Below are positions 12,272 to 15,200 of a stretch of DNA of 64,000 bases, one piece after another. Position 1 is the stretch's first letter. Each line of letters opens with the position of its first letter. A program made the translations under genes and the position numbers. Origin of the DNA: Diadema antillarum (lineage: Eukaryota); NCBI RefSeq assembly GCF_040938485.1, contig NW_027271294.1, positions 558,001 through 622,000 of the forward strand. Reading direction: 5' to 3'. The notes beneath the pieces are model-generated. The model did no database searches. It worked only from the letters and a program-made list of their open reading frames with translations, and was not told the origin of the DNA.

Positions 12272-15200
12272 ATGTCAGACACACAGCCGGATGAGGAGAG
12301 TAATTTGGTGAAGCACACTGGTGGGTGTCACTGTGGGGCCGTCAGGTTTGAGATTCTTGCCCCCGCCATTGTCAATGTGTGGGACTGCAAGTAAGTATGC
12401 AGTACACCTAAAACTAGCCATGTCTGTCTTGTTAATTGCATTTGGGAAAAAATGCTTGAGTTACATACATAAAGACATATAGGGTTTTTATCTGTTGTTC
12501 ATTTTAAAAGGAAAGTTAATCATGTTGTTGCGTGAAATCAGAAAAATCATAGTTCTACCCTAGGTTCAGTGAAAATTTGAAAAATTAAGACACACACAAA
12601 AAGTTATGAACTGATCAAGTTGAGAGAGTGAGATCGATTTGCAACTCTGTGATTTACATGTTTAGCAGCTCTCCATTCTTTTTGTACACCAAATTTCACT
12701 AATTTTCATTTGGGTGAAATATTTTGGCACAGACAGAACTTATCTGCTGAGGAAAACATGCAAATGTGTATTACCAGGTACAATGTAATTTCTTATACAG
12801 GCCTACCAATTTGACCATGTGACCATGTGTATTCAAGAAGAAGAAAGTTGTGAGGATTGGCTTCAATTGGTCTCCCTCCCCCACCTCCCTACCCCCCCCC
12901 GCCCCCCCCAGCTCATGCCCAGATCTGCCACAGAAACTTGAAACTACAATCACTGGGTGGGGGGGGGGGGGGGGGGGGGGGGAGGGAGGGGGAGGGGGGT
13001 GAACCCCAAAGATGAGGAATATTACAAAATCTTTGCTCGAACCAAAAGTGATAGAGCAATGACTGTAATTTGTAGTGTGTTCATGGCAGATGGGGGCCTA
13101 AATTTTACATTTTCATCTTTTTCTTGAAAACAGCATGATGGAAAAAAGATGTGTGGTGTCCATTTGAACAAATTGAGATCTTAGATCGCTCGGGGTTGCT
13201 ACTTGCCAAGTTTGGTGAAAATCAGGCATGGGGTTTTCAAGAAGAAGATGAAAATATACATAGTTAGGCCCCCATTTGGACCCCTCCGACTCTCCTCTCC
13301 TGGGTGCCAAGGGGGGGGGGGGGGGGGGCACCCCTGGATCTGCCATTAAAAAAAACCCAAAAAAAACAACTACACATGTACAGTCATCAATCTACTAACC
13401 CTGACTGGTATCTAGATATCTAGAGAAGACAATCTTCAAAGATTCCTTAATGGGGGAAGGGGTGTTCCCCCCTCTCATTTCCTAATTGATATAATGTGGA
13501 AAGCAAAGCTCACTAAGCCATTTCAATTTTTATCTTTGCAGCTGCTCTATATGTGTGAAGAAGCAAAACATCCACTTCATTGTCCCTAACTCCAGATTTA
13601 AACTCCTGCAGGTATATGTTTTCTCTTCTTTTTTCTGTCTTTCTGTCTGTCACGTATCTCAAATGTGTGTTTATTCTGTTTTGCTACTTTTAAGTATGCC
13701 AGGTTTCTGTGCACCATTTCAAGATTAAAATGATGTGTACAGCCATTATGTCTCATTGCATGAGGGAACCTGAAAAGCCCTGTGCAAATTATATGGAGAT
13801 TTAAGGCCTATTCAAGCACACCCAAAATTAACATTTTGTTGTTGTTGTTGTTGGTTTTTAGGGATGGTGTAGTTTTGTTCAACTTTTTGTGAGATAATGA
13901 GAAACACCTTATGAAGTATGAAAGTGCATACAATTCTAAGAGGAATTCAAAGTTTATTTGATGAAATTTGGTTTTGAAATAGCTGCGATCTCCAGAAACA
14001 AGGAGGTTCTTATCAAAGGTGGGACCCACCTCTTATTAGGATCACTCATTTGTACTTTGTCTTTTTGATATCTCAACCAAAAACTGATTTTCATCAAACA
14101 AACTTTGAATTCCTCTTCGAAAATGGTTTCTAATTATATGAAAGACAGATATTATTCAGAGGGTTGAAGGTTCAGGTGTGATTTTTCTAATTTGTCTCCC
14201 TCTACAAATTAAATTTGTCAAGATCGCAACTGTTGATCTGTAGATTAACAAACATGTCGGAAAAAAGGAACCAGTGGGACTCAAACCTGTCATCTGCTTT
14301 CCGCACAGTGACACTACCACCAGGCTTCACCCCTCTGAATAATAACTTTCTTTCATTTAATATGCCTTGTCCGCCTTGGACTACTTAACATAACCATGTC
14401 AGAATTTCAGAGCTTAGGTACTTGTTCCATGTTCATCGTGTCACTGCCGGCAACCAAGCACAGCCTGGTTGTAGTGTCGCTGCCCGGAAAGCAGTAGATG
14501 ACAGGTTCGAGTCCCACTGGTTCCTTTTTTCCGACATGTTTGTTCATTTACAGATCAGCAGTTACGATCTTAACAAATTTAATTTGTAGAGGGATTCAAA
14601 TTGACAAAAAATCACACCTGGTTTCTAATTATCTTACAAACATACCAGAGATCAAGTTCTAGCTTTGAGTACAATTGATGTAACATACTAAAGCCAATAA
14701 GACAGATTTTCATGGTGGCATACTCCCTGACCATACTCTTTGGTTTCTTTTTCCACCAGGGAGAAGACAATTTGACCTGCTATACTTTTAACACACACAA
14801 GGCCAAGCACACTTTCTGTAAAATTTGTGGAGTTCAGTCTTTCTACACACCAAGGTCCAATCCGGATGGAAAAGGTACAGATGTACAGTATTGATATTCA
14901 AATGTATGAGTATTGGTATTCAAATGTGACTTTGAATATTCTTTTGATTACTTATGTTGAATTTGTCTGTGCTCATTTAATGTGCATTGCATTTTACTTG
15001 TCAATTTGTGTACAAAATGTGAGGTTGGACACTGAGTGTGAAGGGCATAATAAAACATACATTTTCTGCTTTCAACTTTGATAACATCTCTGTGAAAGTC
15101 ACTTTGAAACCAAACCTACCAGTACACTGTCCCATATACCCAATGTTTATGTTAGTAGCTCCTAGATGGGTTTATCATTAGTAAGTTTGTGCAATATTAA

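Follow-up and report, generated by a model that had tools for sequence, protein, structure and literature searches.

A 299-bp repeat family with a tRNA-like module and Penelope-type insertion architecture in Diadema antillarum

Results

The inverted repeat in the window

The window, a 64-kb stretch of Diadema antillarum DNA to which all coordinates refer, contains at 14138-14620 a composite of two head-to-head copies of one repeat unit and a short tail, bracketed by target site duplications (TSDs). Its parts, of which the TSDs were recognised through a direct-repeat search and comparison with the rest of the family, are as follows.

14126-14137, no strand: left copy of the TSD, GTTTCTAATTAT
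14138-14172, minus strand: tail, comprising 3 nt from the end of the unit and 32 nt from the beginning of the one that follows
14170-14326, minus strand: inverted 5'-truncated copy, unit 139-299, forming the left arm
14261-14266, minus strand: T-run of the inverted copy (A6 on the plus strand)
14277-14287, minus strand: mutated B box of the truncated tRNA-like module in the inverted copy
14325-14620, plus strand: full-length direct copy, unit 1-296, forming the spacer (unit 1-137) and the right arm
14449-14530, plus strand: tRNA-like module of the direct copy, with T6 at 14525-14530
14504-14514, plus strand: B box of the direct copy, GGTTCGAGTCC, exact
14621-14632, no strand: right copy of the TSD, GTTTCTAATTAT

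An initial annotation of this DNA had described a foldback element with inverted arms around a spacer of about 135 nt, and both arms and spacer are real. In a repeat search of the window, 14182-14298 and 14493-14609 form a 117-nt core that is 90% complementary, the pairing continues inward through 14294-14326 and 14462-14494, the outermost ends (14173-14186 and 14607-14620) make a perfect 14-nt inverted match, and the arms as a whole are 86.8% identical across 159 alignment columns. The B box and T6 that had been reported in the right arm, and the A6 and B box with one change in the left, are likewise present. The element had been taken to start at 14173; however, the same search matched 14133-14169, which would lie outside an element so delimited, in inverted orientation to the first part of the spacer (14325-14361), and this was the first hint that the boundaries were misplaced. 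The 32-35 nt further out, at 14138-14172, belong to the element: 14169-14138 correspond to unit 1-32 at 93.8% identity, 33 of the 35 nt match the consensus junction between successive units, and the inverted copy carries this tail at its 3' end. Relative to the family consensus described below, the inverted copy shows about 90% identity (89.9% in one alignment and 90.7% over 161 nt in another) and the direct copy 93.6%.

The 14-bp direct repeat TGGTTTCTAATTAT (14124-14137 and 14619-14632), recovered by the repeat search and previously left without an explanation, is accounted for as a 12-bp TSD plus 2 nt, since the TG at 14124-14125 matches the final two bases of the element. This TG may reflect microhomology to the end of the element, or the duplication may itself be 14 bp long. 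Sequence comparison across the whole 64-kb window revealed neither further copies of the unit nor fragments of Penelope-like elements (PLEs) elsewhere in it. A distance of 137 nt separates the element from a downstream exon that encodes a GFA-domain segment, which is weakly consistent with CENPV (one exon, E 0.011). If transcribed within an intron, 14138-14620 would fold into a long hairpin, as had been anticipated, with a predicted minimum free energy of -254 kcal/mol.

A repeat family with a 299-bp unit

When 14173-14620 was searched against the window's own genome (1.75 Gb), we obtained at least 247 matches from 2941 first-look candidates, and the majority of these matches span only query positions 153-448, which correspond to 14325-14620 of the window. 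The whole foldback was matched at about 20 loci with 82-90% identity, and once more with 99% identity at a locus that is a haplotig duplicate. The idea of a genome-wide set of paired, inverted cassettes is therefore borne out only in that the locus is no one-off duplication, whereas its relatives are not consistently paired or inverted. Altogether, the family comprises thousands of copies in Diadema antillarum and its relatives. Searches of the sea-urchin literature returned nothing specific to it, and it may already be catalogued.

We defined the unit as 14325-14620 and mapped it onto 48 loci, which represent 30 distinct insertions once duplicates are removed. A consensus built from 23 full units is 299 bp long; conservation along it is nearly uniform, copies diverge from it by 6-10%, and it terminates in ...CACACCTGAAC with no repeat tail. 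Three forms occur among the 30 distinct insertions, namely single units, head-to-tail arrays (with a period of 299-300 bp and up to at least 19 units in the genome) and inverted composites. Wherever an insertion has an inverted part, minus copies are followed by plus copies, with the 3' ends facing outward and the truncated 5' ends meeting in the centre. All partial copies retain the 3' end of the unit, extending from position X to 299 (X being, for example, 139, 170, 124, 156, 88, 17 or 7), and the central junction is specific to each locus: unit 139 meets unit 1 in the window, and the corresponding pairs elsewhere are 170/1, 124/34, 156/6, 88/50, 17/112 and 154/247, and the two sides are often separated by a short filler or by some 30 nt of additional sequence from the unit 3' end. 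Several insertions are purely direct and lack any inverted part; L062, for instance, has three full copies between a truncated one and a tail. Direct partial tandems are seen in L062, L071 and L030, and the short 3'-terminal fragments that lie upstream of a full copy in L009 and L012 also amount to partial tandems.

The outer ends of these insertions are asymmetric. One terminates at unit 296-299 (...CACACCTG[AAC]), and the other usually runs 26-41 nt, mostly 31-34, into the next unit, forming a tail; a few insertions depart from this, with a tail on each side or none at all. About 17 of the 30 insertions are bracketed in their entirety by direct repeats of about 9-14 bp, and the targets are non-repetitive AT-rich sequence.

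Because the unit also occurs alone, in direct arrays and with junctions that differ between loci, the arms represent two independently 5'-truncated copies and not terminal inverted repeats (TIRs), and the hybrid of TIR or MITE type, built around two Pol III cassettes, that the initial annotation had proposed has to be given up. A foldback or MITE-like DNA transposon carrying a Pol III cassette in each TIR would suit the perfect 14-nt inverted ends and the long arms of the window locus, as well as those other loci at which one terminal sequence is shared by both sides, but we consider it extremely improbable: arm length and central junction change from one locus to the next, an inverted part is missing from many insertions, the tail usually occupies one end only so that the termini are not inverted repeats, and TSD length varies from 9 to 14 bp. 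Long and variable TSDs of this kind fit target-primed reverse transcription, not a cut-and-paste transposase. On the variability of the arms, the asymmetry of the termini and the length of the TSDs, a MITE or foldback transposon was rejected.

The arrays of up to at least 19 units, together with unit numbers that differ between L017 and L073, two haplotype versions of a single locus, speak for satellite DNA that spreads at the DNA level, whether by extrachromosomal circles, rolling-circle replication and reintegration, or by template switching, with inversions arising through fold-back repair. The difference between L017 and L073 indeed indicates that arrays undergo DNA-level dynamics after insertion. 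As an account of how the family disperses, however, satellite spread is very unlikely, since circles that reintegrate at random would lead one to expect random phases, and the outer ends always lie at unit 296-299 or in a tail extending to about 31-39; moreover, the partial copies always retain the 3' end, and the TSDs are regular. The sample of 30 insertions holds none with an arbitrary outer phase and no TSD.

A degenerate tRNA-like module

Unit positions 126-203 form a tRNA-like module that is followed directly by T6 at unit 202-207. Its consensus shows an acceptor-like stem of 7 bp that is interrupted by one bulge, a D-like stem of 4 bp, an anticodon-like arm (GCTGC/CCGGAAA/GCAGT) with a 5-bp stem and a 7-nt loop, and an exact B box. 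Inspection of the sequence reveals that only 2 of the 5 T-stem positions pair, that position 33 is C, and that the A box is a poor match, agreeing with the motif at about 6 of the 9 positions it specifies. Of 66 distinct family copies, 57 have an exact B box and 60 a run of at least six T.

ARAGORN at default settings detected no tRNA, and at 90% thresholds it reported a 'tRNA-Ser(gga)' in the family consensus. With Rfam, a consensus-like unit gave a full-length alignment to tRNA-Sec at 17.9 bits (E 0.48 over 4227 families), a score below the gathering scores of both tRNA-Sec (47) and tRNA (29), and a scan of the window copy itself produced no tRNA match. The E value of 0.48 would be some three orders of magnitude stronger for a single clan named in advance, although the match would still fall far below gathering. 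A genuine tRNA gene was consequently rejected, given the negative default ARAGORN run and the sub-threshold Rfam score, whereas the relaxed ARAGORN call and the 17.9-bit match together point to derivation from a tRNA. The cloverleaf of the initial annotation is thus retained as a set of tRNA-like stems, of marginal quality, and we conclude from these comparisons that the module is in all appearance tRNA-derived but degenerate. It probably originated from a captured tRNA gene or pre-tRNA sequence. We had entertained an origin from tRNA-Gly(UCC), whose anticodon arm we take to be similar to that of the module, and dropped it when a 16-nt pattern had no genome match; the sole tRNAs that ARAGORN found among the fetched loci align poorly with the family. 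A separate tandem family, with a period of about 326 bp, holds a better-preserved tRNA that scores 57.7 bits on the tRNA model.

The module is present on both arms of the window locus because both copies retain their 3' halves, and that of the left arm, whose copy starts only at unit 139, is missing its 5' acceptor strand and some of the A-box region. The mirrored, outward-facing cassettes seen by the initial annotation hence stand as far as a tRNA-related segment and a T-run in each arm are concerned, but the two are not equivalent. Since T6 comes directly after the module, any Pol III transcript would end after about 80 nt and leave out the unit 3' end; the module therefore cannot promote the transposition template. 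Truncation points cluster at unit 167-171, on the 3' side of the anticodon-like hairpin, a position that would fit stalling of reverse transcriptase on structured RNA.

A functional reading, which does not exclude any of the proposed origins, holds that the modules are active Pol III/TFIIIC sites, yielding short RNAs or serving as an insulator, or that the hairpin influences how the host pre-mRNA is spliced or edited. Exact B boxes and T6 in about 90% of the copies examined can be cited for it, as can the predicted high stability of a hairpin so close to an exon (137 nt). We nevertheless judge such a role improbable, because the retention of B box and T6 is explained by the youth of the copies and not by selection, the whole unit being about equally conserved at all positions; furthermore, the A box is poor, the T stem is broken, and the module of the left arm is truncated with a mutated B box. 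At the window locus, the element is most likely a neutral intronic passenger.

Rfam was also used to search for the hammerhead ribozyme. None was found at E<=10 on the window copy including the unit junction, at E<=1 on 27 kb of family arrays, or at E<=10 on a consensus-like unit. By eye, CTGAAGA overlapping GAAAC can be picked out in the unit, yet it leaves no room for helix II.

Penelope-like elements in the genome

Insertions of PLEs are characterised by 5'-truncation, partial tandems and an adjoining inverted 5'-truncated copy, by a tail of 30-40 bp that is often present at one end only and has been described as specific to PLEs, and by TSDs that vary in length; non-autonomous derivatives, of which Chlamydomonas MRC1 is one example, insert as multicopy head-to-tail arrays (Craig et al. 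2021, PMC8557442). Canonical EN+ PLEs contain a hammerhead ribozyme, which is absent from PLEs of the Naiad type (PMC8557442).

PLEs with a reverse transcriptase (RT) and a GIY-YIG domain are abundant in the Diadema genome. A GIY-YIG scan gave at least 585 candidates, 150 of them above the cut-off, and ORFs of three PLE families contain RT followed by a C-terminal GIY-YIG domain. Where neighbouring PLE copies lie on opposite strands, the order is (-,+) 35 times and (+,-) twice, the polarity thus being that of the 299-bp family. In a blastn comparison of the consensus with 30 PLE loci from several families, 3' UTRs included, we obtained chance matches only. A common 3' end, the usual proof of partnership, was thus not seen with any of these loci, which sample the families of a genome with at least 585 GIY-YIG candidates. 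One of the sampled families, family B, inserts into (TA)n tracts, unlike the 299-bp family. Searches of the literature for PLE-dependent SINEs found nothing specific.

The same results bear on a second retroelement origin, in which the family is a SINE mobilised by a conventional LINE (of L2, CR1 or RTE type, for example), with priming from both target strands in a variant of twin priming. TSDs, 5'-truncation and a tRNA-related module are classic SINE traits, and no PLE partner was found by sequence among the 30 loci sampled. We still regard mobilisation by a LINE as decidedly unlikely, for the tRNA-like part is internal (unit 126-203) instead of forming a 5' head, the T6 would stop Pol III, and a poly(A) or microsatellite tail is absent from the 3' end. 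Twin priming of L1 joins different parts of one RNA, and is unlike an insertion made of two copies of one 3' region. Arrays of head-to-tail units flanked by TSDs, and likewise the tail of 30-40 nt, are moreover described as specific to PLEs (PMC8557442) and are not a feature of LINEs.

Distribution and age

Contigs of public runs show a very high abundance of the family in two organisms, and runs labelled 'Echinoderm metagenome' contain parts of it. A 460-nt contig of the second organism spans the right junction of the window locus (14620/14621), reaching 55 nt into the element and diverging by about 5% in the flanking sequence; the insertion hence predates the split of the two organisms and is old. 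Another contig, of 229 nt, covers unit 82-280 and comes from an echinoderm metagenome run marked 'RNA?' that may contain DNA. As contigs, these data give no starts, ends or strand, and none of the runs that hold the family is recorded as RNA.

Discussion

To account for the composite in the window, we propose that 14138-14620 is probably one insertion of a retroelement that is non-coding and non-autonomous and has PLE-type architecture. We favour this reading because the unit, its solo, tandem and inverted forms, their outward polarity, the variable junctions, the tails and the TSDs agree with the published architecture of PLEs, because the genome is rich in PLEs, and because these share the same polarity. 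The insertion would have begun with a staggered break in an AT-rich intron target, giving rise to the 12-bp duplication, and each of the two exposed DNA ends would then have primed cDNA synthesis within the 3' region of the element RNA. Of the two cDNAs, one would have been completed (unit 1-296, plus strand), while the other would have ended at unit 139 on the minus strand and carried the 32-35-nt extension into the next unit that we see as the tail. Head-to-head joining of the two would yield inverted arms of about 155 bp, with the 5' part of the full copy as the spacer. An RNA intermediate, dependence on a PLE enzyme and double priming as the source of the inversion are what we infer from the form of the insertions.

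By itself, the window locus is ordinary and matters very little. What it suggests is that foldbacks in PLE-rich invertebrate genomes should be read first as double insertions of PLE type, and only second as DNA transposons or designed hairpins. The family as a whole offers a short and clean model for the way in which a PLE enzyme generates tandem and inverted copies and a tail, as it provides many young copies of a unit of only 299 bp, with clear TSDs that lie outside microsatellites.

In comparison with known systems, the resemblance to foldback elements and MITEs is superficial and concerns the window locus, with its long inverted arms, spacer and flanking direct repeat; the family has no constant TIRs, its ends are asymmetric, and both junction and TSD vary. 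More is shared with SINEs of the SINE2/tRNA type, which are likewise short, non-coding, flanked by TSDs and present in high copy number, and which have a tRNA-related segment with a B box. The family differs from them in that its module is internal and directly followed by T6, in the absence of a LINE-type, A-rich or microsatellite tail, and in its tandem and inverted composite insertions. We rejected a classical tRNA-SINE on account of the internal module, the internal terminator and the lack of a LINE-type tail.

Animal non-LTR retrozymes are non-coding tandem units of 150-400 bp that are defined by a type I hammerhead ribozyme; they have TSDs of more than 4 bp, occur in genomes with PLEs, and have been proposed to depend on them (Cervera and de la Pena 2020, PMC7229834; Li et al. 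2026, bioRxiv 10.64898/2026.07.22.740005). The 299-bp family similarly consists of short non-coding tandem units dispersed with TSDs in a PLE-bearing genome, but it is without the type I hammerhead ribozyme, and the negative hammerhead scans rule out identity with retrozymes. It could instead be a hammerhead-less counterpart, that is, a PLE-dependent tandem family with a tRNA-like module in place of the ribozyme, perhaps with the family of about 326-bp period included, an idea that we put forward as speculative and on balance unlikely. In such a system, the module could serve as an entry point for Pol III/TFIIIC, as a site where RNase P/Z cut multimers, or as a structure recognised by the RT. 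If the module does prove functional, the concept of the retrozyme would extend past ribozymes.

The closest correspondence is with the PLEs themselves. The family and PLEs have in common 5'-truncation with a retained 3' end, partial tandems and head-to-tail multicopy insertions, an adjoining inverted 5'-truncated copy with 3' ends outward, a tail (26-41 nt in the family) that is mostly found at one end, and a TSD of variable length (about 9-14 bp in the family; 12 bp, plus 2, in the window). Unlike published PLEs, the family has a unit of only 299 bp, without an ORF and with an internal tRNA-like module. By architecture, then, it belongs with non-autonomous retroelements of PLE type.

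Unit number and duplicated loci

Two loci of the 299-bp family, L017 and L073, are assembly copies of one insertion site and share their left flank, but on the minus side one carries 1 full unit and the other 8, and they also differ in additional plus-strand units and in a right flank that is not alike. Once inserted, the array would have expanded or undergone unequal exchange, or else the two copies differ by haplotype or by assembly. Family loci are often present twice on separate contigs with near-identical flanks. Haplotig duplicates are evidently present within the 1.75-Gb assembly, and the copy counts are therefore too high.

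Duplicated loci of the 299-bp family
L001 and L002
L062 and L063
L064 and L065
L068 to L070
L076 and L077

Coding Penelope-like copies and neighboring elements

[quoted passage not shown] One coding family there is terminated by (TA)n tracts.

Directly upstream of the insertion in the window lies a MITE-like hairpin element of ~190 bp.

13934-14121, MITE-like hairpin element, inverted ends of 42 nt, 88% complementary

Among the contigs from two organisms, its ends far exceed every other sequence in abundance. The element's only matches in Rfam were to plant miRNA-precursor hairpins, all at chance level.

Other tRNA-like sequences

Two tRNA-model matches, each just above the gathering score, sit in the flanks of 299-bp-family loci and are probably unrelated, tRNA-derived SINE copies.

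L003:2824-2888, tRNA-model match, 33.5 bits
L008:757-829, tRNA-model match, 31 bits

The assembly also holds head-to-tail tandem arrays with a period of ~326 bp, the units of which score 57.7 bits with the Rfam tRNA model.

Arrays of ~326-bp period, by contig
C1364:628-2977
C1480:126093-127790
C173:1644795-1646824
C742:57688-60121

Judged by the model, this is a second tRNA-bearing tandem repeat family, better preserved than the 299-bp family.
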